A DNA stretch of 64,000 bases from Klebsormidium nitens. Taxonomy: Eukaryota; Plantae; Klebsormidiophyceae. The position numbers were made by a program, and so were the translations under genes. This document shows positions 19,701 to 60,498 of the stretch, piece after piece. The notes under the pieces were generated by a model. It had not been told where the DNA came from and searched no databases. It was given only the letters and a program-made list of their open reading frames with translations. The stretch lies in assembly GCA_000708835.1 (NCBI GenBank), contig DF236951.1, positions 434,101-498,100 on the forward strand, written 5' to 3'. The first letter of the stretch is position 1. Every line of letters begins with the position of its first letter.

Positions 19701-22700
19701 TGCAGAGGTCTTCCGCAAAGCCGACGTCACACAGGTCGTCAGCCATGCGGTTCACCTCGTCGAGGGCGTTCGGGAGCGGCGACGCGCGCAGACTGAGCGC
19801 GAGCGTTTTGGCCGCCAGCTCATCGACCGTCAGCTCAAGCGGCACGTCGGTCAGCTGCGACGCGGCCGCGACCAGTATGGGGAGGACACGTGGGTCTTTC
19901 AGGAGGCACTCCCGCTCGGTCGACGTGGCGAGCAGCTCGTAGAACGCCTTCATCATGCGCGCGCGCATCACGTGCGCGCCCAAAGGAAGCGCGCCCAAAT
20001 CGAAGCCCTCCGAGTGCAGCGCTGCGGACTTCACCCACGCCTCGAGGAAGATCGACGGCAGGCGTGCCGCCACCTGGCTCCAAGAGACCTCCTTTCCCTG
20101 CTCTCCCGCCAGCGCCTTGGGCCGGACGATCTCCCCGGGGGGCTTGTTCGCCTGGGCCACGCAACCCCCCAGCATGAGGACGGCCGGGAGGGCCACCGCA
20201 GGCGGCTCAGGAACCACTTCCTGCGTGCTTTCCAGGTCGGTGCGGGGCAGTTCTTGCCAGGAAGTGGCCCGGCTCGGATCCCCGATCGTGCCGTATCTAA
20301 CGAAGACCAGCCCCGCTGACGCAGGCAAAGCGCTCAGCAGCACCCCGTGCGGTCGAACCGGAAGAGTGGTCGGTGGAGGAGAACCGGGAGAAGGGCTCGG
20401 GTGGACCATAGCATGGGAAGCATGCGGACCTCGCCGCCCGGGGGCATGAACCGAGGACAGGCTCTCTTTGAGCAGGGCGATGCTCTGCGCGTGCCACTGC
20501 TGCCCGGTCGCAAAGAGCGTCGAAAGCGGGCATGAAACTTCCTCCCCCTCGGAAACCAGGCGCATCAGCCCCTCGGGGTACTCGAACGTTTCCAACGAGT
20601 ACGTCCGGCACTCCCCGGTCGACATGTAACTAGGCTGGGCGTTTTGGTCGGGGGACGTGGGCCGGGAGGCGGTCGGGGTCCCGGTCCCCGACCGCACGCC
20701 GACGACGATCGCGTTCAATAGCGTTTGGAGCTCCTGCTCGGCACGTGCCCCGTACAGAGTGACCAGCCCGCGGTCGGTGTCCGCCGGAAGGCTCTCCTTT
20801 CCGGTGCGCCACCAGAAGGAGACGCAGTCATAAGTGCCCGGTTGGCCGGACCCGTTCGCCCCGGGCAGGGGGGGCAGGAGCTGCTGGATCGACGCCTGGA
20901 GGGCGCGCCCGATGACGGGCGCCCACATCGGACGGTCCAGAAGCTCCCGGAGGAGCGCGAGCAGCCCGGAGCGAACCGCGAGGCTACACGTGTCCACGGA
21001 GACGACGCCCGGGAAGTCGGCGCCGAGATTGATTGGATGCAGTAGCCGCGCCTCAGGAGAGTTCTCCGCGGTGATCTGGAGAATCTCATCCACGATCCGC
21101 TTGAGGTCTTCCTCCCCCAGTCCGTCCCACCGGCCGAGAACCACGGTCAGCAGCCGTAACCCCTCTAACCGCAACCCGTCGCCGCACTGCAACGTCGCGA
21201 CGACGCGCAGGAGCAGCGACAGCCACTTGGGCGCGTAGAGGTGACGTAAGCTGACGCTCTTGGGGTGACAGCTGGCGCAGATTGCGGAGAGGAGCGACTT
21301 GAGCGTTGCGCGGCTGTCGCCGATTGGGCCCGCCGCGGTGACCCCCCAGCAGCGGATTCCGTGCACGCGGGTGTCGATTCCGCGCCCGATCGTGCTCTTG
21401 ATGTTGATCTGGATCACGCGCATCCCCTCCATGGGCTGCGTCACTAGGTCCGCTTGGATGACGCGGCCGCCGGCTTCGAAGCTGCGGAGCGGAGCAGAGA
21501 GGTTTTAGAGAGGTTTTAGACGGGAGAGCTGGGCGGAAAGAGGATGACGGGGCGGCCCGCGTCGAAACTGCGGAATGGAGCTGAGGAGTTTTAGAGAGTC
21601 TTTGCACGAGAGGCCTGAGAGAGCTTTGGAAAGACTATTTGGTAAACGCAGACGAACGTTCACGGAAAAGGGTCTTCGGCCAATTGTGACGGCTTTGTCG
21701 ATTGGATGCCCGCGGATAAGCTCTTTCGTTCTTTCGTGGTCGTTCTATCCAAATTGGGCATATGGTACAAAACTTCCGGTCGTTTTGCGCGTCTACGTTG
21801 TATTTGGCGGTTTGATCTATGATACAGACGTTGAAGCACACTCAGGTCGAAAAGCATCTAAAGACCAAACCCTGAATACTCCGCGCCATCCAGGTCAGAG
21901 GCAATACGAGAAACTACAAGACTGTGAATCAATACAGAACCGCCATGTTAAATCAGCTCCGCCTGAAGAGCACTGCATTCAGCCTTGCAAGCCTTCTTCC
22001 TGCCCTTCTTTACCGAGGAATATTCAAGACCTGTCCAGACGCCACGTGTCTCACCGTCGCTTCGCGAGCCCCGCCAGGCTGACGTCCGCCAGCTGGTGCA
22101 TCGTGGTGCTATCGGACGCTCCTCGTACGATCACGTTGTCCGGACAGTAGCTGACCTCCCGGCAGTCCGCCAGGATCGCGAGCCGCGTCAGCGTGACGCC
22201 CTTTGCCACGTGGAGGCGAATCCAGTGGGTGGCCTCCGGCCCACTGGACTGCCAGTAGTTCTCGGTGCCGGGCTCGAGCAGACTCGCCGCGCTGGAAGGG
22301 TTGGACGACACCTGGGCAGCCGCAATAATCTGGCATGTCAAAGAGGTCTAAGGTAGCGGTACAGGAAGGAGCACGGATTCAAAGAGCAGGTTTGATTTTA
22401 AAATCGTGTGATTGAGCGAAGACTGCCCAAAATTATGTGTTTGGAGCTCAAGGTACCCCTACATTCTGCAGAAAGCATCCATCTCGCTGCTCGAGAAAAA
22501 CCCCAGCATTTCGGCGTGTTGAAATTGTCCACATGCTACCGATCTTCGAGCCGTCAAGCTTTCATTTCCAACCCAGACATCAGTGTGTTTCCTTGACGCC
22601 ACATTCGCGACCTTTCTCGATCTTTTCCGTCCCTTATTTCCAGAATAAACTGCCTACAAATGGATTCCTCTCTGGTTCAGCCCAACGTTTTTTTGCTTCC

Positions 22701-39943: not shown

Positions 39944-42900
39944 ATGAGTGCGTTCTGGAGAAAGTTCCGGACGGCGGTGCGCTTCCTCAACAAGGCCAAG
40001 GGGCCGGCCGAGAAGAGTGCGGACCAAGCGAGCGAGCGAGAGCTGGTGGCCTGCCAAGTGGCGATCCTGCAAAAGTCGCCGGTGAGCACTCTGGTGCATC
40101 AAAGTGAAAACGTATTCCCGCTTCTCAAGCAGGTCTGTCCAGAGTGTGGGATCTGAGTACCTTCTTACACGGAGTCGAAAGTGTCATTACCACCCAAGCA
40201 TCATCACTCCATCATATGGATTGGCTTTCGCTTGCTTGTCATTGGCGCTGCAGAGCTGTGATACAAAGATTGCAGCCCTGAGCAGCCAGACATGAGCGCA
40301 AGCTGCGGCCGAGCAAACTGGCAACATTTCAAATTGATTGCTGGGGTTGGGCCGTTCTTGAGTTGAGTTGAGCTGATGGACCCTTGACGTTTGCCGGATG
40401 TGATTGCACCGTTAGTTACACTTTTGAGAATTTGCTTTGAACTTCAGGGGCTTGAGTCCAAGCAATTCTGGGGCCAGGTTTTGGGGCCAGGTCTAAGAAT
40501 CAAATGGGCAAAAAACTATATAGACATAAAGCCTCCCCCTCTCACTTTCCGCTAGTGCTTGGCCGTCTTTATGTAAGTCTCCCACTATCAACATCCTTCA
40601 CGGCAGCCCCCATGCCCCAACCAGGAGCTGGCTGACGTCATCCTTCGTGCTGACGTCATCACAGGAGGCAAGGACCGACGAAGACCTGGCAGTGATCGAC
40701 GACATACTGAAGTCGGTCAAGTTCACCGCTGAACTGCCGCTCCGAGTGCGACTTGAGATCTGCAAGAACTGCACGTACAAGCAAGGCGCCGCAGGCCAAG
40801 AGCTCTTCAAACAGGTGCTCTTTTGAAGGATTTTTCTTGTCGGTTCGGATACTCTTTGGCCAGGTCCCCGAAACAATCAGTGGTTAATTTGGAGTCTCGT
40901 CTGGCCAAGAGAATCCAGGTGATCGACAAACCCGGTATACTCCACTGGTTCGGATAATGAGTTGACGCTGCTGACAGCTCCTACTTATTGTCATATGCAC
41001 GCCTGACGAGTTCGATGAGGTTGGACTGTGGTTGACAGGACTTTCGACGTGCACAATCAGTTGGTGCAATCAGTGGCTCGATTAGTATTGTGCTGTAAAG
41101 GGGGACGTGTTCAAAGCCCTATCTGTGACCTCCTGTTTTCACAAGCTAAGCCACAGACGGCTCTGGGCCGAGCGAAGTTTCACTTCGCAGCCTTTGGCAC
41201 TTGTGGACAAATGACGGGCCGCTTTGGCCGTTTGAAACGCTGTCCGGACTAGTCGAACGGAACGCCTTTGGGTTATACGATTACTGGTCTCCTTCACATT
41301 CTTACGTACCACCTAGGACGACTGGCCTCGACGTTCAAACACTCGAAATGTGGGCTCATTAGACCCGCAATTGGGGACCGTTGGTCCTATCTTCGACGGA
41401 CCCGTCATTGGGGACTGTTGGTCCTATCTTTGACAAACCAATTGCTTTGATGTTAGAAGAGCATCTAATCGAAGACATTCGTAGCCGCTCGCCCAAGAAA
41501 GAGAAGAGATGATTATACTCGTTTAGTAATATAGTCTTACCGACTACTCCCTTGCAGGGCGACTCCGGCAAAGAGTTCTTCATCATCCTCTCGGGCATCG
41601 TCACGTGTTCGGCGATCAACACCAGCACGGGCCAGGCCTCCGTGGTCGCCCGGTTGACCATCCACCAGTCTTTCGGCGAGCGGGGGCTCCAATCAAAAAA
41701 CGCCACGCGGCAGGAGACGGTGACCCTCGAGAGCCGCTGCGACTTCCTCGTCATTAGCAGGGACAACTTTGACGTCATCAACCAGCATCTGCAGTCGAAC
41801 GAGAGCCGGAAGAAAGTGGACTTCCTGAGGAATGTGGGCGTGTTCGCGCACTTGCCCCAGTCTAGTTTGCAGATGATCGCCACGGCGATGGCGGCCCGCA
41901 CGTGCCCCAAAGTAAGCTCGCGTCTCTAGTTGTCTTCCATCTGCGCTTCTCTCCCTCTCCGATCTCGAATTCACTTGAGGATCCACAAAACCGTTTCACA
42001 TGATTTCGCGCCTCCGCAATCGAGCCTCCCGATCACTTTGCGGCAAGGGTGAAAGGCAAGTAGGCTGACAAAGCCCCTTCGAGCATTCGGGTGCGGAATT
42101 GGTCAATAGACTCAGCGTTGGATACGGCAATGGGCGATTCAAACTGTAGACACGTACGGCTGGCTCCCCAAAGCGCGCAGTCAAACGGGGTTGAGCACGT
42201 CCTGTTTTAGGGGCTTGCACTGCTCGTCTGTTCTGCAACGGCCTCCTTAAAAGCATGCGTTCGATCGGGGCGATAGAGCGGTCACTGTTTCCTTCTTTCT
42301 TTTTCCTTTTCGTCATAAAGGCCACCAAAGAATACACGAGCAGTGCAGCAGTGCATTAACCTTTGACTGGACTTCATTTCTTAAGTGACCCAGGCTCTGA
42401 CAGAACCCCATCCCGTGCCCAGAACTCCGTCATCAAGCGCCAGGGCGGCGACAGCACCGAGATCTATTTCCTTGTCACGGGCACGTGCCGCGTCATCCGT
42501 GACGTCACCTTCTCGTCCCGTGAGTCCATCCAACTCTCCAGCCTGTCCCTCGTCCGCGACGCGATCGACAGCGCGTCGGACGCGGCCGCGGGGCGCCGGC
42601 GGCCGGGCGATGCGGCAGCGCCCGACACGATCTTGGGGCTGCCGCTCGCGCCCACTTCCGCCGCGGGAACTTTCGCTCTACCGGCGTCGCTGGCCGTTCC
42701 GCTGACCAGGACGGAAGGGCAAAGGAGCTCCGCGGAAGCGGCAGGTTCTGAGGACGGGCAAGAGGAGAGCGGAACCCCATCGACCGCACGAGAAGCTGAA
42801 GCGGAAGAAGATGATAAGGAGGGGGCTCTTATTGGCGTGGATAAGCGAGCGGACGATCCCATAAGCGCGGAGACAGTGGAAAGTCGCAAAAGCCGCGTCT

Positions 42901-44427
42901 CGTTTCAACTGCCTTCGAGCACCCCTCCCGAGCGGGGGCGGTCCGGGACCTCCAGCCAGAGCCGGCGGAAATCGTCCGATCCGGTTGGGCGGACCCCGGA
43001 TTCCGCTCCGAGTACTAGCGGCCGCGAGCGGACCGACTTTCCTGCGCGCGCTTATGCGGGGGCGGGGGAGAACGTATCCCCGAAGCGCACGAGCAGCGGT
43101 CCCCCGTCGTTCCGGGCTCCGCCCGAGCCGTTCTTTCCGGCCGGAATCAACCCCAGCCACGGCGAGCGGATCTACCCTTGGGAGCGGTCGCAAAAGTGGC
43201 CCAAAACGACCCCGCGCTCGCGTTCTGCGTCGCCGCCGCACGTGACCGAGAGCCCGCGCGCGCGGCGCGCGCGCGCGAGCGCGGACCCGTACTCGAGCAA
43301 GCGCCTGACGGTGACGCAGATGCTGCGCGCGATGCCGAAGCGGAAGGAGAAGTCGCGGCGGCTGTTTCTAGAACTGGGTCAGTTGAACCCGCCCGCGTAT
43401 TTCGGCGAAGCAGGCTTGCTGCGGAACGAGGCGCGGTGGACGACTATTGTGGCGGCGACAAATGTAGAGGTGCGGGTCGCAGGAACGATATTTTGATTGG
43501 ATTTTTGAAGTTTGGGGACTTGGAAAACGGAAAACTCAGGAAGCGTTCCAAATGCCCTCCGGGTCTGATATTAGCAAGTCAAGATGGTTGTGTTTTCTTC
43601 CTGTGAGTTTCGAAGCTGCTCTCCGCTATTTACAGACGCTCTATATGATTGTCAAGTGTCAAGTGTCGATCGCGCAACCGTATCATAGACAAAGGCCAAG
43701 CCTTTGTTTTGCGACTGGTTGAACTTGAGACCCTGAGGTTTCGAACTCCAAATTTGTCCGCAAGCGTACGGAATCTGCAGATGGCACGGATGTTAATCTT
43801 TGCGTTCTCAAAAGGCGCCTGAAACACGGTTCAACTTTTCTTTCCGCAGCTTTACGTTATGAACAAGCTCGACTTCCAAGTGCGCGTCGGGCGGGATATC
43901 ATCAAGCAGATGGAGCAGCGGATTCCGGAGTATCCGGTGAGAAGCAGCCTCCGTTGAAGCAGATCTCAAACGGAATCGTCACGGGAATACTCGAAGCAAG
44001 ATACATAGACATCATGACCATAGCAACTGAAGGTTGAGGAACTTTTCGGGAGCAAGCAGAGACGAGAAACGACGTGGCTTCATTGCGTCGATTGCTTTAG
44101 CAGGGTCCTCTTTTCAAGCATTCGACATAGAAACTCGATTCTGAGATCTCATTTCCGTTGCCGCAGACCGACGACGCAATCCGGAAGCAGTTTTTGCGGA
44201 ACGTGCTGTGGTCCAACTACAAGGCCGCCCTCGTCTCCGAAGTGACCGCCCACCGGAGCGGAAACGGGAAGCCGACGTCAGCTGTTCCGCTCCCGAGCGC
44301 CAACTTCCGTCAGCCGGACGGTCAGACCGTGCGGTTGCCGCGGCTGCTGGAGCGGAAAACAAATGCGTCCGCGCCAAATGTTAAGCTCCTGAAAGGAGCC
44401 GTTATGCCGATACCCACGTTAGATTGA
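39944..44427 (+). CDS. Cyclic-nucleotide-binding domain protein (two cNMP domains, CNBD2-like); 6 exons
   Basis: Exons 39944-40081, 40665-40814, 41558-41911, 42423-43469, 43850-43936 and 44167-44427 are all phase 0 with GT-AG ends. Motifs: RTDEDLAVIDDIL, LFKQGDSGKEFFIILSG, FGERGL...RQETV, IKRQGGDSTEIYFLVTG, YFGEAGLL...RWTTIVA. Confidence 0.88.
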
Positions 44428-46887: not shown

Positions 46888-47018
46888 CTAGCACGCCGCC
46901 TTGCACGTGCCGCTGCAACACAGCTTCCGGTCGGCCGGGCAGCGGAGTCCGTTGAAGTCGTTGCAGTTGGGGCACACCTGGTTGCCGGTGTGATTGACCG
47001 GCTTGTTCGTGCACTTGC
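46888..47018 (-). CDS. E18: terminal exon with the first 8 Cys of a module, then stop
   Basis: ttgcag|GC-KCTNKPVNHTGNQVCPNCNDFNGLRCPADRKLCCSGTCKAAC*; the TAG immediately follows C8. Confidence 0.88.
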
Positions 47019-50000
47019 CTGCAATGTGCACCGTTGGATTGCGTTCAAAGAAAAGCAGGTTCAAATAGTCCACATTTAAGTGACCGTTCCCACCAGGGGC
47101 GATGACAGTCCCTTGCTGGATCGGCACCGTTTTACTGAGGTCAGCTTACTGTGCATACTATCGAAACCACTTCAAATTTCTCAGCGTCGCGTTTTACCGA
47201 GTGTTGTCACTGTCATGACGCCTCCGCTGCTAGCAGACAGTCGCCAGGAAACTTCGAAAGAGCATCTGCGGAACTCCGACCATTCAGAACGCGAATTTCT
47301 GACATGGGCAAAGAAGTGACTGGGTGATAGGCTGGACGTGTACGGGTACCGCACCCCGCTGGATTTGAAGTTAGCACGTTAGTCCCGTAACCCAGAATTA
47401 CTGAGTGGAGCCACACCTTAGAACAAGGCCAACCACTTACCGATGTTGCCGCTGTTCTCCTCAGTGCAGCAGAAACCGGTGGGGCAGTCACTGGCATACC
47501 GGCAGTTGCAATCACCGGTGTTTGCTGCGCAGTCTCCCAGCGGACAGCGCATGCTCTTGCCAGCGGGGCAGCTCGCGCCGTTGAAGTCGTAGTTACAGTC
47601 CTGACACACTTGTGTCCCGTTTGCCAGGACGGGCGTACTGGTGCAGACGCCTGCATCGACAAGTCTCTCATTTAGGCCGGTGTTGTATCAGACCGCTCCC
47701 CAAGGCTGAAAGCAACTCAAGCACGAAACCCGAACTCAAAATGCTCCGCACCGTGCCCACTATAGAACCCCAAATCAAACGACCCCAACCGTCCCCAAGG
47801 CACTGATCCCACTTAATACAGTCGAAAGTCAACGTAGAATTGATACTACGTTGCCTGCATTTAAGGGCGCAGAACCTATAATGGTGATCCGTACCAACTC
47901 AGCATTTAGCAATCATATCATTGCGGGATCTAAAATTCAAATAATGAGCTTTTATCCTACCTCCCTGAGGAGCTGTTGGGACGAAACATGCTAAATCGCC
48001 GAGAGAAAGCGATAGCAGTTTCCATTATATTGCGGGCCAGTCTCGATGGTCTTGAAGGGCCCTCCTAAGATTCTCGGTTTGTACACTGAGTAAACGATTT
48101 GAAAGTTGCTTATCCCAAAATGGGGCCCCAAAATATCAATTCCAAAACGCAGTTAAACATCGAAGGGAGCGCAAGAGCTGGAGGGCTGGCACCCTACCAA
48201 AGTCGCCGGTTCCCCGGGCCGTGCAACAATAGCCGGGGCGACAGTCTCCATTATACTGACACTTGCAAGCGCCATCACTCGTGGCGCAGTCCCCAAAACC
48301 GTAATCGCAGCACACCGGCTTGGATGCCGGGCAAGCGGCGCCGTTGAAGTCGTAGCAGGCCGGACAGATTTGCGTCCCGTTGGTAAGGACGGGCGTGTTT
48401 GTGCAGACGCCTGCATCAGCGTCTGGGCTCATGAGCCTTTCGAGGTAAGCACACGCCAGTATCGGATGCGTTCCAAAGTGCGCATTCGACCAAGACTCCG
48501 GTTTGATTCTGCAATGGGCCGCCGATCCGACTCGTCTACAAAAGATGTTTTCTTTGGCAATCAAACATCTTGTATCGAGACAGCTTAATTCTACCCAGAT
48601 TCCAATCTGGCAAAATCGACCGTCCCTGCTTGGAGGCTCGATCCCTTTCTCTTGAGGGGCTGATGCAAGACATAAGGGAAACTTCGAGAGAGTCGCTAGA
48701 GTCCCAGTCATTTGATTGCACGCCAGCCTCGTTGGTAGTGAAAGGCGCTTCTAAACCCTTTCAGCCTTTTCTTCAGCAAGCGTCCAGAAAGATCGAAGCC
48801 CAAGATTTCACAACTATGTTCAAACATCTGAGGTCCGGATGGATTGCCTACCGAATTTGTCGCTGTATTCCTCAGTGCAGCAGTAGCCGGAGGGGCAGTC
48901 AGCGGCCCAATAGCACTTGCACGCGCTCTTACTGGCGGCGCACTCCCCGTAACCGGGGCAGCACACCGGCTTGGATGCGGGGCAAGCGGCGCCGTTGAAG
49001 TACTTGCAGGTTGGACAGACTTGCGTTCCATTCGTAAGGACGGGCGTGTTTGTGCAGACGCCTGCATGCATCAGCAGCTAGGATCATGAATCTTTTAAGA
49101 TAACCATCCAACAATGTTCGGAGCGTTTTGAACGCGCGCGTCGACTTAATTGATGTTTGTAACATCCGGAATGGGCTCCGAAAATGACTCGTTCAAGAAA
49201 GAGACTGCTCCCGGGTAATCCAATATAGTCAGCCTGGTCAACTCAGTCAGTCCTTTGTCAGTCAGTTTGGCAAAAGCATCATCCGCCGTGCTCAAGGAGG
49301 CTTGGCTCTGTCCTTTGAGGGGCTGATGCTGGACAGAAGCTGGTTGAAGGAGAGTAGCGAAGAGGTTTCATGTGATTGCACAGTAATTCGTTTGGTCGTG
49401 AAGGGCGCTTCTGAAACCTCTCCGGCTTTGGAAATGATCAGCATGCAACCGAAAGTACACGAACCCACCGTTCCAATATGAAGCGCTAGAGGCCAACTAA
49501 CCTTGCCTTGTTCAAAGGGCTAAACCCAAAAGAAAAGAAGCGCACAAGGATGGACTACCCACCAAAGTTGCCGCTATCTTCCTCCGTGCAGCAGTAGCCG
49601 GAGGGGCAATCACCAGCCGACTGGCACTTGCAAGCGCTCTTACTGGCAGCTTCCCCATAACCGGGACAACAAACCGGTTTGGATGTGGGGCACGCGGCGC
49701 CGTGGAAGTCGTAGCACGTTGGACAAACTTGCGTCCCGTTGGTAAGGACGGGCGTGTTTGTACAGACGCCTGCATCAGCGGTTGGGCTTCGAGGTAAGCA
49801 GACAAAACTGTTTGGTGCGATTCAAATGTGCGCGGGCAACCCGGGTTAAACCTCTGACGTTTGCCAAAGGGCCCCTGAAAACGACTCGTTCGAGTCAAGC
49901 GTTCTCCTAGGTGTTCCAACCTGGCTAACGAACCGTTTTGATCGCTCTATCAATCAAAGTTGGCATAAGCATCCGGGTTGTTGTTTGTCTCCTAAGGCGC

Positions 50001-53000
50001 TGATTTGGACACATCTAAGTGCGCGCCAGCGTCGCCTGGTGTGAAGGGCGCTTACAAACTCAGTGCTACCAGGATACACGAAGTGGCTTTCAAGTACGAG
50101 GCCCTAGAGTCCCACAGCCTTGTTCGAGAAGCTAAGACCGGAATAAAAGAAGCGCAAGAGGATGGGTTGCCTACCAAAGTTGTCGCTATACTCCTCAGTG
50201 CAGCAGAACCCGGAGGGGCAGTCAGTGGGCGACTTGCACTTGCACGCGCTCGTACTGGCAGCGCATTCCCCGAAACCGGAGCTGCAGCACACCGGCTTGG
50301 ATGCGGGGCAAGCGGCGCCATTGAAGTCGCCGCAGGTTGGACAGACCTGCGTCCCATTGCTGAGGACGGGCGTGTTTGTGCAGACGCCTGCATCAGCGGT
50401 TGGCTCATGAAGCTTCTGAAGTATCAGTGAAAGTGTTTGGTATGTTTGAATGTTCGCAGGCAACCTTATTGAGCTGACAAACGTCTGGCAGTGGGCTTTG
50501 AAAACGGCTCGTCCGAAAAGAACAATTCCTACCGTAGGTGTTTCAACCAGGTCAGCATCTAAATTGCGCGCCAGACGGTCAATCAAATGGCCGTGAAAGG
50601 GGCTTGTGAACTCCCACCACTTTTGAATCATCAGATAAGCTAAGACACAGAACTTGACACGGCTATCCAATATGAGCCCCCCGGATCCCACAGCTTTCTT
50701 TGAAAGGCTGAAACGGAAGTAAGGAACGCCGGAGGTCACTTCTTTCTTCAAAGCCCCCGGAAGAAGTTGGCAAACTCCAAACATATTTCTTCACGAACAG
50801 ACTCCTGGACCCCCACAATGACCCACAACGATGAAGATTGCTTTCATGCGAAGGATTCTTGTAACCTTGATCTGATGAGAAGGTAAGTGTGCCAAATGAA
50901 CTGCGGAATTTTGCAAGCGTGGTCTTTTCTGATCCACCCCAAATGTACTCTGAAATTAGTTTCCTTGAGTTTCGATTTCGGTGTCTAGTAATCTCTTGAA
51001 CATTGTCCTGCCGTTCGTAGGTACCTGTTACAACACGCCGATCCTCGCAAACGGCACACAGATCTGCCCGGAATGGAGAAGAGAACGGGACCCGAGAATA
51101 CGAGTTTCGCGCAATTGGGCCGCCGATGATCACAAGTTTTTGGTCTACAAGGTCATCAGCATGTTCGGCAGCATTTTCGGCAGGCCAGCCAGACTCAAAG
51201 CTCTTCGAAGCCAGAAACTTGAAGTACGTTTGGCATTTAACGGGGGTGTAATCTAACTCACCAGGCGTGTTATCGTACTCGTGGCTGCAGCAGTACTTTG
51301 ACGGGCAGTCACCGGCGTAGGAACAGGGGCAGGAGGGTGCCGACTCGACGCACTGCCCCAATGCGCAGCACGCTGGTTTGTTGGCGGGGCAAGTCAGCAC
51401 ATCCCAATAGTTGCAGTCCGGACAGACCTGATTGCCACTGCTGTTGAAGGGGTTGTTTGTGCACTTCCCTGGAAGGACACGCTTCTCTTAGAACTGGCAT
51501 GTCGGACCGAGCCCAAGACAATGCAAGTAAGGAGACTCGTATGAAAGCAGTGTCGATTGTTCGAAGACACCACCTCAAGGGGGAAAACGACAAGTCTGGA
51601 ATCATACACGAAGCCCTTTGAGGCTTGGATCTGGGTGGACTGGTCTGTTGTTGGTGCGTTCATAACGAAAATCTGATAGTGCGCACACAAGACGTTGTCG
51701 TAGCACCCATCCATAGCGTTTTCTTGAGATAGCAGCTTAGGATTGCAGGTCACTGTATGCTTGGAACAAACGGCAACCATGTTTACTCGTAGAGTATACC
51801 AGGATTGGGTTCCATCCTTTCAAGTTTGATTGGCGGCACTGAGTTGCAAGTACGGATCCAAAGTGTACAAAAGGACAACCAGACACCCACTTGCAAACGC
51901 AGCTTGACCGTCGCGTCATCAAGTTGATGGCTCAACACAATCACAACCGACATTCAAATCTTACTTCTGATCGGACTCGCCGGACTTAATCCACATTACA
52001 ACGACCCACCTGTTTTGCCGGAATACTCTTCCGTGCAACAAAAGCCGGAGGGGCATTCGTAAGAAAATCGGCAGGTGCACCCGGCGTTGTTTGCCGCGCA
52101 CAGCCCGCTTGGACAGCACACCTTCTTGCTAGCCGGGCAGCTGAGCCCGTTGAACTGGTTGCAATTTGGGCACTCCGTTGCTGAAGAAGCCCGTGCTCGA
52201 GCAGTATCCTGGACAAGAAAGTCGGATGTTAATTGCGCGCATGACAACCAGATACAAATTGTGAGGAACCCTGGAGTCCCAGTTCGCGCACAGAGGGAGT
52301 GCTAAGGGCTCTTATATCTTGCACGCATTATAGCAATTGAGCAGAGTAGGTTTTCATCTTCTAAGGAGGAAACTTCGAAAGTAGCGATTTCGTTGACCAC
52401 GGGTATGTTACGTTTTTCCGATAAGAACCGAGGACAACGACGCACTTTAGAAACGTCGTGACGGTGCCTTTCTTCAGCTGAAGGAATAGTACGCTCCTCC
52501 TCAAGCAGAGCTGATTACGCATACAAACACAATCAGGATGATGGCCAAGGATACAAGTTCTTGCGGCAAAGGGGCGGCTTTGGCTTAGTACGGACAAACT
52601 GAGCGGACAAGGAGCGTAGAAAGGAGTCCGTCCATTCTAGTATAACGTGGCTACTCGACCTTGCTTGAAATGACACGAACAGACACCTCTACACCTTGAT
52701 AGACATGTCAAGCCTAGGCCGAATTCCCTCCAATATATGCAGATGACTCCCGTAAGAGACGCTCACCGAGTTTGCCACTATTTTGTTCGGTGCAGCAACC
52801 TTTGTTCACGCCGCAGTCCGAGGACGATCTGCACCTCTTCAAAGGAGGTGGAGGTGGGGCCTGGCGCGCGGGGGGGGGATTTGGGGTATGGAGAACCGCG
52901 GGTGGAGGATTCAGCTGGGGGGGTGGTGGGGAGTTTTTGATTGAAACTGGTGGGGGAGGCACGGGGCTCCGAGGTGGTGGGCGCCGAATAGAAGGGGGCG

Positions 53001-56000
53001 GGTTTGCTTTGACGGGTGGAGGTTGTGTGAGCACTGCTTTTGGCGGGGGGAGAACGCTGCGCGGGGGAGGGTTCAGCAGTGGGGGCGGGCTTTTGGTTTG
53101 GGGAGGCGGGTTTGCTTTGACGGGCGGAGGTTGTGTGAGCGCGGCTTTTGGCGGAGGAGGGGCGCCGCGGGGGGGAGGGTTGAGCGGCGGGGTGGGGTTT
53201 ATAATCTTGCTTGGCGGGCTAGCTTGCGGTGGGGGAGGTTGAGAGAGCGCGATTTTGGGAGGAGGGGGACCGCTTAGAGGGGGAGGATTGCGAGGTGGGG
53301 GTGGGTTTTTAGACGGTGTTGGGGGAGAGGAAGAAGGCACGGGGCTCAAAGGGGGGGCCATTGTCGGACTGTTCGTGCACTTCCCTGCGTTCACACCATT
53401 GACATCTCAGTTGAAGCAAGACAAAGTACCAACCGTGAGGACTTATTTTTCCAAGGCGATGCTGACTTTTGATTTAACACCGTTTCAAGTAATCGAATCA
53501 CTTTGCATAGAGTCACGAGCACTCCGTTCCTTGAGTTGCATCTTACTGAGACTTTTCCTATCATAAGCCTTCCCTGATGGCAAAAACGAACAGCGGGAGA
53601 ATCCAGCTTTGATGCAATCTGGAATGCGTTTTTAACGAGGATGGAAAATGTAATTAGGCGGTCAACCGGGACGGTACGGGTATCCGCAACCGTTTGGCTT
53701 TCAAGTCGGCGAGTTCCAGTATTCCAGCAACTCCAGAAATTGCTCGCAGAAGCCACACCTGATGACACGGCCATTCGCTTACCGATGTTGCCGCTGTTCT
53801 CCTCAGTGCAGAAAAAACTGGGCGGGCAGTCACTGGCATAGCGACAGTTGCAGCCGCTGGTGTTTGCCGCGCAGTCTCCCAACGGACAGCACATGCTCTT
53901 GCCAGCGGGGCAGCTCGTGTAGATGCAATCATGACACACTTGTGTCCCGTTTGCCAGGACGGGCGTGTTGGTGCAGACGCCTGCATAAAACAATCTCTCG
54001 ATTAGGCCTGTTTTGAGATAGATTGGTCCCCCGGGCTGAAACAACTCAAGCACAAAACCGGGATTTGAGATGCCCCGCACCGTACCCACTATAGAACCCC
54101 AAGTCAATTAACCCCAACCGTCCCCGAGGCACTAATTCAATTCAATTCAGCCGAGAGCCCCTGAGCTCGTAGAATTGATACAACGTTGCCTGCATGAAAG
54201 GGCGCTAAACCTAATCTGGTTGATCCGCAATCAATCTTATCAGTAGGGGATCTGAACTTTTGAGTAACGAGCTTTCAATCCTTCCTCCCGGAGGCGCTGC
54301 TAGGACGAAACGAAACATGCGGAATAGCTAAAGAAAGCGGCTGCAGTCCCGTCGAATTGCGGGCCAGTCTCAATGGGCTTGAAAGGCCCTCCTAAGATGC
54401 TTCGTTTGTACAATCAGTCAGCGATTGGAAAGAGGCCTACTCACTCTGGAGCCCGAGAATCTTAGCTTTGAGCAACTGAAAATGAAAGGGAGCGCAAGAG
54501 AGTTGGCAGCCTACCAAAGTCGCCGTCCCCAAGGGCCGTGCAACAGTAGCCGGGGGACAGTCTCCGCCATACTGGCACTTGCAAGCGCTGTCACTTGTGG
54601 CGCAGTCCCCGAAACCGTACTTGCAGCACACCGCCTTGGATGAGGGGCAAGCAGCACCATTGAAAGTAGCAGAGTAGCAGGCCGGACAGACTTGCGTGCC
54701 GTTGGTAAGGACGGGCGTGTCTGTGCAGACGCCTGCACCAGTGGCTACGCTCGATCATGAATCTTGTGGATTGAGCACACGACATGCTCGATGCGTTTTG
54801 AACGTGCGCAACCATCCAGACTCGGCCAGCTCCATAAGTTAACTGCCACAACGGCGCAAGTAGCCGACTCGTCTACGAAGGTTTTCTTTTTCGCCTCATC
54901 TCGTATTGGGTTCGCCTATTACTATCAAGAATCCAATTTTGCAAAATTATCCTGCCCTGCTTGGAGGCTCGATTCTTCCCTCTTGAGGCGCGCCCTAATG
55001 CTGGACTGCTTTAACGAAAATTCAGGAAGAGATACTATCTAGAGTCTAAAGCATCTGATTGCGCGCCAGCCTAATTGCTAGTGATTAAGGGCGCCTTCAC
55101 ACCCTCTCAGCCTTCGCACTCCGCATGCGATCAGAAACATCAAAATTCATCTTACAGAAAGAAGACTCCGAATCCCAGAACCATGTTCAAAATTTCAAAA
55201 GTTTGAATAAAAGGAGCGCAAGAGGATTTGTTGCCTACCAAAGTTGCCGCTTTGTTCTTCTGTGCAACAGGAGCCGGAGGGGCAGTCACTGGCCGAATAG
55301 CACTTGAATGCGCTCTTACTGGGCGCAGCACACTCCCCATAAGCGGAGCAGCACACCGGCTTGGATGCGGGGCAAGCGGCACCGTTAAGGTCGGTGCAAA
55401 ACGGACAGATTTGGGCTCCGGTGCCAGGGTCGACGGGCGATTGGGTGCATTTGCCTGTGAAAAGGAACACTCCGTTTCGCAAAACTCTTGACGGTTCCAC
55501 TTTTAGCAAATGGCCTGCGCTGCAGGCGCCTGATGGCTTGCAATGAACCAGTTCATCTGAAACGGCCAGTATAAATGTCCAAACGTGCAATCCAACGTGG
55601 TAGGAGTACTGATCAGTACTGAATCCTATCGCAACATTCAGTATTCGATGGCGCGTCAAAACGGACGGAACAACGCGAACTCCGTTTATTTTCCCCCTTA
55701 AGAACGAGGACGTGCTCAATGATCATCGGCCTAAGTGCGCTAACCGGACGGAGATCGAGATCCGGCGATCCTGTTGGGCAGGAGGCAAAAATGGCGCTAA
55801 ACGTCTGAGATCTTAAGCATTCCTCTTATTTTTCCTTTCGTCAAGCTACTTCGCCGCAGACAGATTCTTACATAAAATGCAGAGGATCATCGGCCTTCAG
55901 TTTGAAGGTCAACTCCATGGTCCAATTCAATCTTTCGAACATGCCCTGATTATGGAAGCTTCAAACGGTATTCACATCTCAACATCTTCTAAACTCCAAT

Positions 56001-59000
56001 AACCAGGTAAAAATGGTGTCACTATAAGATAGAACTCTGTTTACCATCATCCACACATTTGCAACAGACTTTGTGAGCACGCCAAAAACTTACCAAGCTG
56101 GCCACTCCCCTCCTCGGTGCAGCAATACCCAGACGGACAGTCGAATGCGTACTTACACCCACAATCTGTGGGGCTCTTGGCGCAGTCTCCCAACAACGGG
56201 CAGCACGTTGGCTTGGATGTCGGGCACTTGAGACCGTTTAGGTCCTTGCAGTCTGGGCAGATCTGTGTGCCGTTTGCGAGGATCGGCATGTTGTAACAGG
56301 AACCTACGAACGGCCAATAACAAAAATCAAACAAAAATCATTGCCCGGGTCTCGTTGGTTTTTGTTTCCTGTCTGCAGGGTCTTGAAGCATGTAGAAGGC
56401 AGTCTTACCAAGCATGCCCAAACAAAAAGCAGAGGAGAGCGAGCAGTCACTAGCCAAAAAGGTTCGGAACTTGCACTGAGGATGAACAAACGACAGATGG
56501 CGGCTCGAATCCAGACTCAAGTTTGTACATTTGAAGAGAACAGGTAAAGTACGCTCGAATAACGAGTCCCAAGTTTTGACCACAGATACCTCCTGCACGA
56601 TTCTGGGTTGGCCAAGAAAAAATTGCTTAGTGGGATCCTTGAGCTCTTTCTGGCTATCTAGAAACATCTACCTATTGAGTAACAACTTCATCGTGCCAAA
56701 AAGGTTCGACAGTCCGCAAGACAAGCAACCAGGACAAGTGCAGCAGAGTCGGTCCTACAGATGCTACGGATGATATAGACGAAGAAGAGAGAAGTGGACG
56801 CTTGAATCGTTAGTACCGTGAGTACTGCCATTTGGGTTTGAGTCACCTCCGAGTCACCAAATCTACACAACACCTTGTCCGAGCTTAATCGCATCCTTTG
56901 CGGGGCGCCCCTATAGCAGGTCATCAAGACATCAAAGTTGTCCATAGCGAGAAATGTGAAGGACGTTTGGCAATCGAAGGGGGTGTACTTAAGCTCACCC
57001 AGCATGTTATCCGACTCGGAACTGCAGCAATAGTTTGAAGGGCAATCACCGGCGTAAGAACACGGGCAAGAGGGTGCCGACTCAACGCAGTGCCCCGTTG
57101 CGCAGCACGCTGGTTTGTTGGCGGGGCAACTTAGCACATCCCAATAGTTGCAGTTTGGACACACCTGCTTGCCGCTGCTGTCGAAGGGGGCGTTCGTGCA
57201 CTTTCCTGCAAGGATGGTTTTGCGTTTTTAAAAAACCACGTTGAGATTATGGAAACGTATTCCAGAAAGGAAAGCCAAATGAGGATGTTGTTGATGGACG
57301 GATTAGACACCAATCCAAGGGGGTTGACAACAGTCAGGGACTCCTGAGTGACGACCTTCGAGGAAGCATAATGAATGGGAAAGCTTGAATTTGGGGTTCT
57401 AATATATCGGTGCGTCTCAAGCGGATTGCTGATAATGCTCAAGCGCAACTACGTTGTCGTAGCACCCATCCGCAGAGTTTTCTTGAAGCCAACAGCTTTT
57501 GTATGCAAATCGTGTGAGCTTCCAAAGCATCGACAGGGATTCTCGGCAACCCATTCTACCCCGTGAAGTGCATCAAGATCGTGTCTCGTCCCTTGATCGG
57601 ACTACAGGAAAGGTCCAAAGTGTATAAGGGACATTCAGACACCCAGCCCGACCATCACGTCATCAAGTCGATGGCTCTACCAGTCAGAAGCGGACCTTCA
57701 TTCTCACTTCTGATCGAACTCGGACTCAACCCGACGATACAACGACCCACCTATTTTGCCGGAATACTCTTCCGTGCAGCACAAGCCGTATGGGCATTCG
57801 CCAGAATATTGACAGGTGCAGCCCGCGTTGTTTGCCGCGCAGAGCCCGCTTGGACAGCACACTTTCTTGCTGGCCGGGCAGCTGAGCCCGTTGAAGGCAT
57901 TGCAGTTCGGGCACTCCTGGGTGCCGTTGCTGAAGAAGCCCGTGCTCGAGCAGTATCCTGTAGAAGGTAGAAGAAGAGTCGAATAGCAATAGCGCACAGG
58001 GTGATGAGATACAGCAGGGTAATCAGTTCCAGCTGATAAGCAGGCCTAGGGAGTTCCGATTCCCACGCAAAGCTAGCGCTGAGCAAGAACTTGCAAAAGC
58101 ATAACAAATGAAGGAGTTGCTTTTGAACCCTTTCAAGCAGACCTTGAAAATTCTGATGCGAGGAAGTTACATCGGATCTCGACGAGACGCAGGAAACACG
58201 GACGCCCTTTGAAAGTTTGTACCGAATGCCTGGTGGCGTGTCTGACATGTCTACATCAAATCAAAACGTTCTGAATTTGAGGCTTGGAGAATAGCAAGCT
58301 TCACTCCAGGCACAGCTTTACTTTATTGCACATGCAAGTGGATTACTATATGGCTGAAGTGATAACTCCTCATCGCCACAAAAGGGGCGACCGATATCGG
58401 CTGTCTAGAATGATGTAAACAATACAGTCGGATTGAGTTGACAAAGGTGGAAAGAAGATCGTCCGTCTCTGTACAACGTGGCTATTCGGCTTCGATTCAC
58501 ATGACAACTCGAAGGCAGATATACTTCTTGATACATATGTGCAACTTCAGAAATGGTCCTTTGGAGAATATCCAAATGACCCTTGAAAGACACGCTTACC
58601 GACTTTGTCGCTACCTTGTTCGGTGCAGCAACCTTTACCCACGGGGCAATCAGCGGTGGATCTACACCGCTTAACAGGGGGTGGAGGTGGGGCCGGGAGC
58701 GATAGGAGAGGAGATGGCATAGGGGGAACATTGGGTTGGGGATTTACGGGGGGCCGTATTGGGGAGGTTCCTGCTGAAGCTGGTGAGGGAGGAACGGGGC
58801 TCTGAGATGGTGGGCGCATGATCGGAGGAGGCGGGATTGCCTGAGGGGGCGGAGATTGTGCAAGCACGGCTCTTGGAGGGGAAGGGGCGCTGCGGGGGGG
58901 AGGGTTAAGTAATGGGGGCGGGCTTTTGAACTGAGGTGGCGGGGAAGATGCAGCGACGGAACTTTGAGGCGGGGAAGCCTTCGGCGGGCTCGCTTGAATT

Positions 59001-60498
59001 GGGGGGAGGTTGAGAGAGCGCTACCGTGAGAAAAGAGGGATCGCTCACAGGGGGAGGAGACTATGGTGGGGGCAACTTCTTCGACGGAGTTGGGGAAGCC
59101 GAAGAAGGCACTGGGCTTTGAAAGGGGGGAGGATTGGGCGGGGGGGTTTGAGGGACGAAAGGAGGAGGGTTAGCTTGAAGGGGGAGAGACTGAGACAGAA
59201 CAGATATTGGAGGAGGGGATCCACTTCCGAGGAAAGAGTTGACCTTCGGAGGCGGGTTCGTGGGCAAACTTGGGGGCGAAAGGGAAGGCGCGGGACTGTT
59301 GGAGGGCGGGGGAGACTGGGGAAGGGGTGGCGGGTTGGCTTGAATTGAAGAAGGTTGAGAAAGCGGTAGCATGTTGAGTGTCGGAGCGGAAGAGGGCGAA
59401 GCGGATTGAGTTGGGGGGGTGGAGCTTATTTTAGGCGGCAGGTTGGTGTTAGGGGTGGGAGATGAGGCAAGTCCAAAAGTCGAAGGAGGGGAGCTATTTG
59501 AGGGAAGAGAAGTTGAGGGGGGGCTGTTGAGTTGAGTAGGGGGGGTGGGCAACATGGTAGGTGATGTAGTAGGGGGGGTGGGCAATGTGGTAGGTGACGA
59601 TAAGGGCACAGCCTCAGGCGGCGGGTTACCATTCAAAGGGGGAGAGCCGCTGGTGCTAGTAGGAAGGGGAGTGGGAGTAGTGCTCGCAGAAGGAGAGAGT
59701 CTCGTCGAAGGACTTGAGGGTACGGAAGATTGGAGCACTGGAGTTGGGGAGTTGGCTTGCAAAGGAGTTTGGGCTTGTCCGCTTTGGGGGGGTGGGGAGC
59801 CGCTTGAAGCTGTACTTGAGGGGGGGGTGTAGGAGGCTGGGGTGTTGTAGGCGCGGTTGTAAGGGGGGGAGGCGAAGGGGAGAGAAGGCTGGTCCCCGGG
59901 GGAGGGGAAATAGCGGGAGGGGTAGTCACCGGAGGGCCTTGCAGAGGTGGGGGGCTTCCTGTAAAAGCAGATTCACAAAATGCTTTGATGCACTGGCAAC
60001 CAGAAGGTTTTCTTTGGGGTCACATGTAAGTTCTCTTCAGAGCGCAGATCTGCTTTCCAATAGATGAGTCCTTACAATCCAGTCTTTTCACAAGAGTAAC
60101 ATGCATGACTGACACAACTCGAGTTAAGCTTGGGACTGCTTGTTGAGTTAGATCAACAGTTCTAAGTCGACATAGAAAAAGTGTCAATAGTCAAGGTCTG
60201 AAAAAGTGCTTGCAGCAAGTTGCAGCAAGTTCTCATAACCGCACTCATTAGTTGGCTTATCTATGACTTAGTAGCTACATAGGGACCCCAGCACTAAAGT
60301 CATTGAACGCTTCACCTGGGCCATGATCAAACGTAGAAAATTCAAATTAGATTACTTGAACAGCCCCAGGCACTTCCAAGACAGGTGTCAACTTGCACGC
60401 TCACCTGTTGGTGGAACTTGAGCTGAGGCCAGGTTGAGCGAAGCGGCCAGGACGTATGCTCCCAGCAGCAGCCATACCCACATGGAAAGGGGCGCCAT
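46888..60498 (-). CDS. Secreted modular glycoprotein locus: signal peptide, Pro-rich (extensin-like) segments and a tandem array of 12-Cys knottin/hevein-like modules, one per exon. Several exons are disrupted (skipping or partial pseudogene).
   Basis: E1 encodes a signal peptide and ends in phase 1. All 15 internal exons on the minus strand start and end in phase 1 with AG/GT, and E18 ends in TAG. Joining only the intact exons (E1,3,4,5,6,8,9,11,13-18) gives 3141 nt, an open frame of 1046 aa. Confidence 0.8.
47441..47650 (-). CDS. E17: Cys module (paralog of E8; C5 changed to Arg)
   Basis: GVCTSTPVLANGTQVCQDCNYDFNGASCPAGKSMRCPLGDCAANTGDCNCRYASDCPTGFCCTEENSGNI; 210 nt. Confidence 0.87.
48198..48410 (-). 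CDS. E16: 12-Cys module (paralog of E7)
   Basis: GVCTNTPVLTNGTQICPACYDFNGAACPASKPVCCDYGFGDCATSDGACKCQYNGDCRPGYCCTARGTGDF; 213 nt. Confidence 0.88.
48852..49061 (-). CDS. E15: 12-Cys module
   Basis: GVCTNTPVLTNGTQVCPTCKYFNGAACPASKPVCCPGYGECAASKSACKCYWAADCPSGYCCTEEYSDKF; 210 nt. Confidence 0.88.
49563..49769 (-). CDS. E14: Cys module (C7 codon deleted in frame)
   Basis: GVCTNTPVLTNGTQVCPTCYDFHGAACPTSKPVCCPGYGE-AASKSACKCQSAGDCPSGYCCTEEDSGNF; 207 nt. Confidence 0.85.
50175..50387 (-). CDS. E13: 12-Cys module
   Basis: GVCTNTPVLSNGTQVCPTCGDFNGAACPASKPVCCSSGFGECAASTSACKCKSPTDCPSGFCCTEEYSDNF; 213 nt. Confidence 0.88.
51010..51069 (+). pseudogene. E12: inverted, truncated copy of the E5 acceptor and exon head
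   Basis: gccgttcgtag|GTACCTGTTACAACACGCCGATCCTCGCAAACGGCACACAGATCTGCCC on the plus strand is 58/60 identical to the reverse complement of 56255-56314. Confidence 0.9.
51262..51468 (-). CDS. E11: 12-Cys module (paralog of E4)
   Basis: GKCTNNPFNSSGNQVCPDCNYWDVLTCPANKPACCALGQCVESAPSCPCSYAGDCPSKYCCSHEYDNTP; 207 nt. Confidence 0.88.
52010..52208 (-). pseudogene. E10: paralog of E3 with an 8-nt frameshifting deletion
   Basis: 199 nt. CAACGG[CACCCAGG]AGTGCCC in E3 is CAACGGAGTGCCC here. Confidence 0.85.
52767..53384 (-). CDS. E9: chimeric exon - module head (GKCTNSP), ~170 aa Pro-rich linker and a 4-Cys half-module
   Basis: 618 nt open frame: GKCTNSPTMAPPLSPVPSSSPPTPSKNPPPP...LKRCRSSSDCGVNKGCCTEQNSGKL(G)|gtgag. 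Confidence 0.88.
53783..53980 (-). CDS. E8: Cys module (4-codon in-frame deletion; C11 changed to Phe)
   Basis: GVCTNTPVLANGTQVCHDCIYTSCPAGKSMCCPLGDCAANTSGCNCRYASDCPPSFFCTEENSGNI; 198 nt. Confidence 0.85.
54515..54732 (-). pseudogene. E7: Cys module with a 1-nt frameshift
   Basis: 218 nt. TGT-CCCCC-GGC-TAC at 54552-54556 is one base short of the CPPGYCC frame seen in its paralog E16. Confidence 0.8.
55239..55454 (-). CDS. E6: Cys module (C8 changed to Phe)
   Basis: GKCTQSPVDPGTGAQICPFCTDLNGAACPASKPVCCSAYGECAAPSKSAFKCYSASDCPSGSCCTEEQSGNF; 216 nt. Confidence 0.85.
56094..56303 (-). CDS. E5: 12-Cys module
   Basis: GSCYNMPILANGTQICPDCKDLNGLKCPTSKPTCCPLLGDCAKSPTDCGCKYAFDCPSGYCCTEEGSGQL; 210 nt. 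Confidence 0.88.
56999..57205 (-). CDS. E4: 12-Cys module
   Basis: GKCTNAPFDSSGKQVCPNCNYWDVLSCPANKPACCATGHCVESAPSCPCSYAGDCPSNYCCSSESDNML; 207 nt. Confidence 0.88.
57751..57957 (-). CDS. E3: 12-Cys module
   Basis: GYCSSTGFFSNGTQECPNCNAFNGLSCPASKKVCCPSGLCAANNAGCTCQYSGECPYGLCCTEEYSGKI; 207 nt, phase 1-1. Confidence 0.88.
   Translation of the reverse strand, partial: DTARARASSATAPRSARTAMPSTGSAARPARKCAVQAGSARQTTRAAPVNILANAHTACAARKSIPAK
58600..59958 (-). pseudogene. E2: long Pro/Ser/Thr-rich exon ending in a 4-Cys half-module; disrupted as assembled
   Basis: ttttacag|GA-SPPPLQGPP... There is a -1 shift at the G8 run (59820-59827), an in-frame TAG at 59061-59063 and a +1 shift at the G6 run (59001-59006). 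It ends VKRCRSTADCPVGKGCCTEQGSDKV(G)|gtaag. Confidence 0.75.
60405..60498 (-). CDS. E1: signal-peptide exon
   Basis: MAPLSMWVWLLLGAYVLAASLNLASA-QVPPT(G)|gtgagc has a hydrophobic core and an A-S-A cleavage site. It is too short to appear in the ORF track. Confidence 0.85.

Follow-up and report, generated by a model that had tools for sequence, protein, structure and literature searches.

Chimeric hydroxyproline-rich glycoproteins (HRGPs) of green algae include the pherophorins of Volvox and Chlamydomonas, the GP1-type wall proteins and the sexual agglutinins, which combine an N-terminal signal peptide with Pro-rich X-PPP/SPPP rods alternating with globular Cys domains. Small Cys modules in tandem are known from progranulin, a secreted precursor with ~60-aa modules of 12 Cys, and from hevein lectin arrays such as wheat germ agglutinin and pokeweed lectin-C; plant RD21-type papain-like proteases carry granulin domains C-terminal to the protease. 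At the level of gene structure, animal EGF, Ig and FN3 modules are encoded by phase 1-1 exons, following Patthy's exon-shuffling rule (titin/nebulin-type arrays), and frame-neutral skipping occurs in some of them. Tandem homologous exons that arose by duplication within one transcription unit are also found in Dscam1, where they are mutually exclusive and selected with the guidance of docking and selector sequences, and in the clustered protocadherins, whose variable exons are each equipped with a promoter and a leader and are spliced to constant exons. Here we analyzed a stretch of 64,000 nt of the Klebsormidium nitens genome (contig DF236951.1, positions 434,101 to 498,100; hereafter called the window), which contains the locus KFL_000020760 (GAQ77715.1), a hypothetical protein in the public entry. 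An earlier reading of the same DNA (the original prediction) had described one signal-peptide exon feeding an array of interchangeable Cys-module exons and had proposed a combinatorial secreted-protein system. In our assessment the locus is probably (roughly 70%) one nuclear gene for an ordinary repeat protein, a secreted chimeric glycoprotein of the wall or matrix type, whose exons are spliced in series and in which individual copies have decayed.

A hidden Markov model (HMM) built from eight clear module copies gave 14 minus-strand matches between positions 46879 and 57961 (E-values 1e-16 to 1e-40), two C-terminal part-matches, each closing a Pro-rich exon at its 3' end, a single short match on the plus strand, and no further significant match over the rest of the window. 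The gene lies on the minus strand and consists of a signal-peptide exon, 15 internal phase 1-1 exons encoding modules or Pro-rich segments, and one terminal exon (Table 1). Modules are bordered by ..ag/G and G/gt (the slash marking the exon border), the split codon having one base upstream and two downstream (phase 1 at either end). All introns are of the GT-AG type and 398-874 nt long, and none of the 32 splice sites deviates from the canonical form. Twelve internal exons are intact with a length that is a multiple of 3; among E3-E17, 12 of 14 exons are divisible by 3. The HMM matches and the reading of the splice sites confirmed the layout, coordinates and exon count of the original prediction to the base, together with the phase-1 symmetry, by which any subset of intact exons stays in frame, and the integrity of the splice sites. 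The product would thus begin with the signal peptide and rod E2, followed by six 12-Cys modules (E3-E8), rod E9, and eight modules plus a truncated terminal one (E10-E18), i.e., two units of rod and bead string, with splicing in series as the constitutive default.

The module comprises 68-70 aa with the pattern C-x12-C-x2-C-x7-C-x6-CC-x5-C-x6-C-x-C-x5-C-x4-CC. A G-x-Q motif before Cys2 is conserved and in K. nitens mostly reads NGTQ, an N-glycosylation sequon. The module belongs to no described family, in agreement with the original prediction. Pfam contained no family for the window modules (E-values up to 10) or for 89 modules of the whole set (E-values up to 1), and nothing for the rods or for 10 full-length relatives, except Peptidase_C1 in the Mesotaenium protein P0004. 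A Pfam match to ATX_III with an E-value of 1.2 was rejected as noise, and there was no sign of a toxin. Sequence searches of the PDB with one module and with a two-module profile returned only a non-significant LDLa-like match (E-value 0.24). AlphaFold gave a two-module model with a predicted local distance difference test score (pLDDT) of 88 and a predicted template modelling score of 0.71, and a one-module model with a pLDDT of 84. When both models were compared with the PDB by Foldseek, no match was found below an E-value of 3, the top matches at noise level being hevein lectin arrays, knottins and MUC2. The hevein arrays likewise consist of tandem small disulfide-rich modules and share the local motif CP-x3-CC-[ST], but they contain 8 Cys in ~43 aa compared with 12 in ~69 here; there was no match to Chitin_bind_1 (PF00187), and the Foldseek matches to them were not significant (pokeweed lectin-C, E-value 3.4; wheat germ agglutinin, 5.6; overall 3.4-9.9, with a probability of ≤0.03). 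Granulin differs in Cys spacing, and neither a Pfam match to Granulin (PF00396) in the 89 modules nor a Foldseek match was obtained. With a confident predicted fold and no structural relative, the module is a candidate new domain family for curators.

Both Pro-rich exons, E2 and E9, are rich in X-PPP/SPPP, and the combination of a signal peptide with Pro-rich blocks is the one that characterizes HRGPs. In E9, the rod separates the first Cys of a module from its last four and contains 108-nt tandem repeats (36 aa, Pro-rich) at 52997-53267, and E2 contains a 33-nt repeat at 59535-59597. The translated E9 rod has no Tyr, and thus lacks the extensin cross-link motifs YXY and VYK. The predicted protein shares with the chimeric HRGPs the signal peptide, the alternation of Pro-rich rods and globular Cys domains, the green-algal distribution and a probable role in the extracellular matrix or wall. 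It differs from them in its 12-Cys unit, which occurs in strings of 6-8 with one unit per exon, and in the absence of Tyr cross-link motifs from E9; no Pherophorin (PF12499) match was found by Pfam in the window exons or the 10 full-length relatives. We infer that the protein is secreted, that its rods are Hyp-glycosylated and that its beads are knotted by disulfides. The original prediction of a secreted modular protein, probably of the wall or matrix, is supported, exon 1 encoding a signal peptide. A strong plus-strand G skew at 52-54 kb and 58-60 kb results from CCN codons on the minus strand.

The HMM search for relatives, which the original prediction had proposed as a check, used the 11 open modules as profile and covered 1.84 billion representative proteins. 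It returned only 31 representatives, all from green algae or environmental contigs, and no land-plant protein with the module. The best match, P0001, was GAQ77715.1 itself. Two more K. nitens genes (KFL_003630080, KFL_003630020) are located on scaffold DF237312 and were recovered as P0002 (1527 aa, 15 modules) and P0006. Mesotaenium endlicherianum has at least eight module proteins with 7-8 modules in series, Edaphochlamys debaryana one with 20 modules (P0003), and Raphidocelis subcapitata three; a few metagenome and Logan contigs complete the set, among them one Logan contig (L003) with five modules in a single uninterrupted open reading frame (ORF). Across the relatives, 5-20 modules follow each other in series. 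The gene for P0002 spans 19.6 kb and again has one module per exon with phase-1 boundaries; in Edaphochlamys, the inter-module intron is also in phase 1 and many modules contain one additional internal intron. In the Mesotaenium protein P0004 (ME000168S01796), a signal peptide precedes seven modules, which a Pro-rich linker joins to a papain-type Peptidase_C1 domain. It resembles the RD21 type in joining Cys modules, a Pro-rich linker and this protease, but the modules lie N-terminal rather than C-terminal to it. This architecture of P0004 shows the module to be an extracellular building block. We describe an extracellular 12-Cys module that, among the proteins searched, occurs in streptophyte and chlorophycean algae and a few environmental contigs and that is relevant to the evolution of algal walls near the origin of land plants.

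The reading frame of E1 is validated by the paralogue, because its first exon (L001 ~11503-11598, plus strand) keeps the leader in the frame of the original prediction (MAPLSVWPWLLGVYVLAATLNLASAQGPPTG/gt). In both public models, GAQ77715.1 and GAQ87590.1, exon 1 is translated in a frame that lacks the signal peptide, even though the two paralogues share the leader; both models are corrected here in this respect.

The history of the array can be read from its internal similarities. Self-BLAST paired E2 with E9, E3 with E10, E4 with E11, the start of E5 with the inverted relic termed 'E12', and E6-E8 with E15-E17, introns included; one alignment of 1.8 kb (47334-49029 versus 53669-55419) shows 72% identity and spans introns. 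To judge from these pairs, the array grew by duplication of a block of ~6 kb, which comprised one rod and module types A-B-C-D-D-E, and by a subsequent expansion of type D (E13-E16). In a tree of the modules, types A and B group with modules of the paralogous genes with strong support, and the module types are therefore older than the gene duplication. Each module corresponds to one phase 1-1 exon since the array as a whole descends from one such exon. The uniform phase was therefore inherited from one ancestral exon and is no independent evidence of design. In these properties the gene resembles the animal phase 1-1 arrays: there is one module per exon, all boundaries are in phase 1, homology runs into the flanking introns, and growth occurred by tandem and block duplication. 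It differs in that it belongs to a streptophyte alga, encodes an undescribed module and includes several visibly damaged copies, and it is a clean non-animal example of how exons arise and decay within a symmetric array.

Between the duplicated blocks, exons are 84-87% identical, compared with 58-71% for introns. The pairwise ratio of nonsynonymous to synonymous substitution rates (dN/dS) between paralogous exons was 0.12-0.47. With modules from outside Klebsormidium used to define the scaffold codons (19 of 68 columns), dN/dS was 0.04 for scaffold codons and 0.32 for loop codons. The exons are under purifying selection, and the loops show no diversifying selection. The original prediction had named dN/dS near 1 everywhere as the sign of a dead pseudogene; this was not found, and a long-dead pseudogene is ruled out, because dN/dS is low and the exons are better kept than the introns.

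Frame lesions were located in each of the three exons that the original prediction had called unreadable, E2, E7 and E10. E2 opens in the frame of the leader (GSPPPLQGPPVTTPP...) and reaches a stop at 59635-59633. For its middle part, the sole open frame is a different one (59762-59061) and closes with a TAG at 59063-59061, and its last ~400 nt are back in the first frame and end in the C-terminal part-module. A tiny intron of ~28 nt (gtgagc...cggtag) that would remove the TAG was rejected, being far below the intron sizes of this gene. E7 lacks 1 nt of a C run near 54554; 6 nt inserted at a site upstream of this run leave the frame unchanged. In E10, 8 nt (GGCACCCA in E3) are deleted after 52177, and a cryptic acceptor 28 nt into the exon (cttcttcag/CA, exon start 52180) restores the frame with loss of the first Cys. 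The inverted orientation described earlier for 'E12' was correct, but the element is not an exon: it is a 66-nt fragment made of 11 nt of intron and the first 55 nt of an E5-type exon, with 94% identity to 56314-56249 and no alignment beyond its 66 nt. The surrounding block duplication shows ~85% identity, compared with the 94% of this inverted pair. The 12-Cys scaffold is less fixed than previously described, as one scaffold Cys each is lost in 4 of the 11 intact module exons (E6, E8, E14, E17), compared with 0 of 11 in the paralogue. There, each fourth copy of the module is damaged in its 5' half, and in each case differently (L001 18292-18504, 20469-20677, 23630-23827, 26750-26966): by an AG to AC change at the acceptor, by deletion of 1 nt, by insertion of 13 nt or by insertion of 1 nt. 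The public model of the paralogue keeps only the last 111 nt of the damaged copies via a conserved internal acceptor (cgcag/AATGC).

In a repeat protein gene spliced in series, these defects would reflect later decay, comprising the E10 deletion, the loss of an E5-type copy that survives as the inverted relic, and the four lost scaffold cysteines, and some copies (E2 and E7, with frameshifts in C runs) were possibly misread by the 454-based assembly. Several observations weigh against this reading. As assembled, the leader frame shuts within E2, and an open product from the leader needs a bypass of E2, E7 and E10, or the cryptic acceptor in E10. E7 and E10 shift the frame with intact splice sites, so that a transcript spliced in a strictly constitutive manner would fail to encode the full protein. 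Neither the E10 deletion of 8 nt nor the TAG in E2 has the form of a homopolymer error, and the public model shortens three exons that are open (E4, E6, E16) by using phase-1 donors inside them.

The main alternative for the present state of the gene, which we consider possible but distinctly less likely, is a recent decaying pseudogene whose function is carried by the two DF237312 paralogues. It would account for the number of lesions in ~4 kb of coding sequence (at least one frameshift plus the in-frame TAG in E2, the 1-nt deficit in E7, the 8-nt deletion in E10), for the reduction of one module copy to an inverted relic, and for the difference in lost scaffold Cys between the gene and its paralogue. 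Even pairs that include a damaged exon, however, have a dN/dS of 0.2-0.26 (E3/E10, 0.21; E7/E16, 0.26), and given the better conservation of exons than introns any loss of function must be recent. The intact set of splice sites also argues against a pseudogene; moreover, the paralogue holds damaged copies too, so that damage alone is no mark of a dead gene, and the C-run frameshifts may be 454 errors.

At the other extreme, all frame defects could be assembly errors in an intact, ordinary, constitutively spliced gene of 16 exons. The genome was assembled with Newbler from Roche 454 and Illumina GAIIx reads (PMC4052687), and C runs are the site of the defect in E7 and of at least one in E2. An assembly gap (N run, L001 ~12330-12500) within the Pro-rich exon of the paralogue shows that such rods were hard to assemble. 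This explanation is unlikely as a complete account, since homopolymer miscalls do not account for the 8-nt deletion, the TAG in E2 or the inverted relic and the paralogue has non-homopolymer lesions of its own, such as the AG to AC acceptor and the 13-nt insertion. For E2 and E7 alone, the C-run frameshifts may be misreads of the 454 assembly.

The regulated repertoire of cassette exons suggested by the original prediction, in which one leader would be joined to varying subsets of modules to give many secreted isoforms while damaged exons are never chosen, is improbable. The exon phases would allow it: all internal exons are phase 1-1 and the intact ones multiples of 3, and E2, E7 and E10 can be bypassed without loss of frame. 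This symmetry was inherited by duplication, and exon decay together with the 454/Newbler assembly is a simpler cause of the damaged exons, which had been taken as support for cassettes. E7 and E10 have normal splice sites and nothing visible that would exclude them. There is a single ATG and signal-peptide exon, and each module exon starts at a phase-1 acceptor without a promoter or leader of its own, unlike the variable exons of protocadherins. With introns of the observed lengths, steric exclusion of neighbouring exons is not expected. The relatives are predicted with many serial modules, one of them as a contiguous ORF, which corresponds neither to the one-exon-per-product feature of Dscam nor to the splicing of single variable exons in the protocadherins. 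The loop dN/dS value also argues against selection for diversity.

Sequence pairing as known from Dscam was sought in the gene itself. The only conserved intron motif, CTCTTGCGCTCC, is located 15-32 nt past the donors of E6, E7, E13 and E16, and its complement is absent from 46.8-60.6 kb, so that no docking/selector pairing was found. The motif may be a duplication leftover or an intronic splicing element. A general scan of the gene for inverted repeats yielded a single strong pair, the 66-nt relic of E5 (51010-51075/56314-56249), with a predicted RNA duplex of -129.5 kcal/mol. If formed in the pre-mRNA, this duplex could cover the E5 acceptor by pairing it with the E11-E13 intron and loop out E5-E11, which would be compatible with a regulated choice of exons. 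Combinatorial splicing is thus permitted by the exon phases and otherwise unsupported. As it stands, the locus is no example of a Dscam-like diversity system in an alga, which would be notable if true. Marginally less probable still is a use of the array as a splice-level buffer and diversifier, in which the damaged E2, E7 and E10 would be skipped and varying subsets of the ~12 readable modules joined into secreted proteins of differing length, the inverted copy would pair with E5 to loop out E5-E11 including both damaged module exons and rod 2, and the internal phase-1 donors of the public model would be traces of real isoforms.

The public model GAQ77715.1 was compared with the window, and all 17 coding segments match it exactly, residue for residue. 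A brown-algal origin, to which GC content and intron size had pointed, is rejected by this match. The model starts at an ATG at 60475 in another frame, treats 59243-59021 of E2 as an intron, omits E7 and takes the cryptic acceptor of E10. The internal donors at which it truncates open exons are located on the minus strand at 57129 (A/GTTGC, E4), 55318 (A/GTAAGA, E6) and 48259 (T/GTCAGT, E16). K. nitens gene models were obtained with Augustus after SPALN mapping of cDNA (PMC4052687). The omission of E7 and the truncations could reflect cDNA hints, as would be expected if modules were used selectively; for the truncations, predictor noise is the other possible cause. A search for transcript-derived protein fragments with E13-E18 and E3-E6 as queries returned only Mesotaenium and K. 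nitens genomic models, and the gene identifiers are not mentioned in the searchable literature or in the supplements of one K. nitens RNA-seq paper.

Table 1. Exons and related elements of KFL_000020760 (positions in the window)
Feature	Position	Strand	Description
E1	60405..60498	-	94 nt; start codon and signal peptide MAPLSMWVWLLLGAYVLAASLNLASA followed by QVPPT; donor G/gtgagc, ends in phase 1; read directly
E2	58600..59958	-	1359 nt; Pro-rich rod 1, ends in C-terminal part-module CRSTADCPVGKGCCTEQGSDKVG; internally out of frame; paralogous to E9
E3	57751..57957	-	module type A, 207 nt, phase 1-1, intact
E4	56999..57205	-	module type B, 207 nt, intact
E5	56094..56303	-	module type C, 210 nt, intact
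E6	55239..55454	-	module type D, 216 nt, open; scaffold Cys8 to Phe
E7	54515..54732	-	module type D, 218 nt; frameshifted, splice sites intact
E8	53783..53980	-	module type E, 198 nt, open; Cys11 to Phe
E9	52767..53384	-	Pro-rich rod 2, 618 nt, intact
E10	52010..52208	-	module type A, 199 nt; 8-nt deletion relative to E3
E11	51262..51468	-	module type B, 207 nt, intact
'E12'	51010..51075	+	66-nt inverted relic of acceptor and 5' end of an E5-type exon, within the E11-E13 intron; unusable as exon
E13	50175..50387	-	module type D, 213 nt, intact
E14	49563..49769	-	module type D, 207 nt, open; Cys7 codon deleted
E15	48852..49061	-	module type D, 210 nt, intact
E16	48198..48410	-	module type D, 213 nt, intact
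E17	47441..47650	-	module type E, 210 nt, open; Cys5 to Arg
E18	46888..47018	-	terminal exon, 131 nt including TAG stop; truncated module, 8 Cys
Motif CTCTTGCGCTCC	55213..55224	-	E6
Motif CTCTTGCGCTCC	54489..54500	-	E7
Motif CTCTTGCGCTCC	50149..50160	-	E13, 1 mismatch
Motif CTCTTGCGCTCC	48166..48177	-	E16

Scans of the window for tRNAs and Rfam families were empty. Neighbouring genes occur at 14682-21444 (minus strand) and 42363-43496 (plus strand); they comprise long ORFs with SPRY and UBA domains, situated in a stretch of 60-63% GC, which is above that of the rest of the window, and, further along, an ORF with a cyclic-nucleotide-binding domain.

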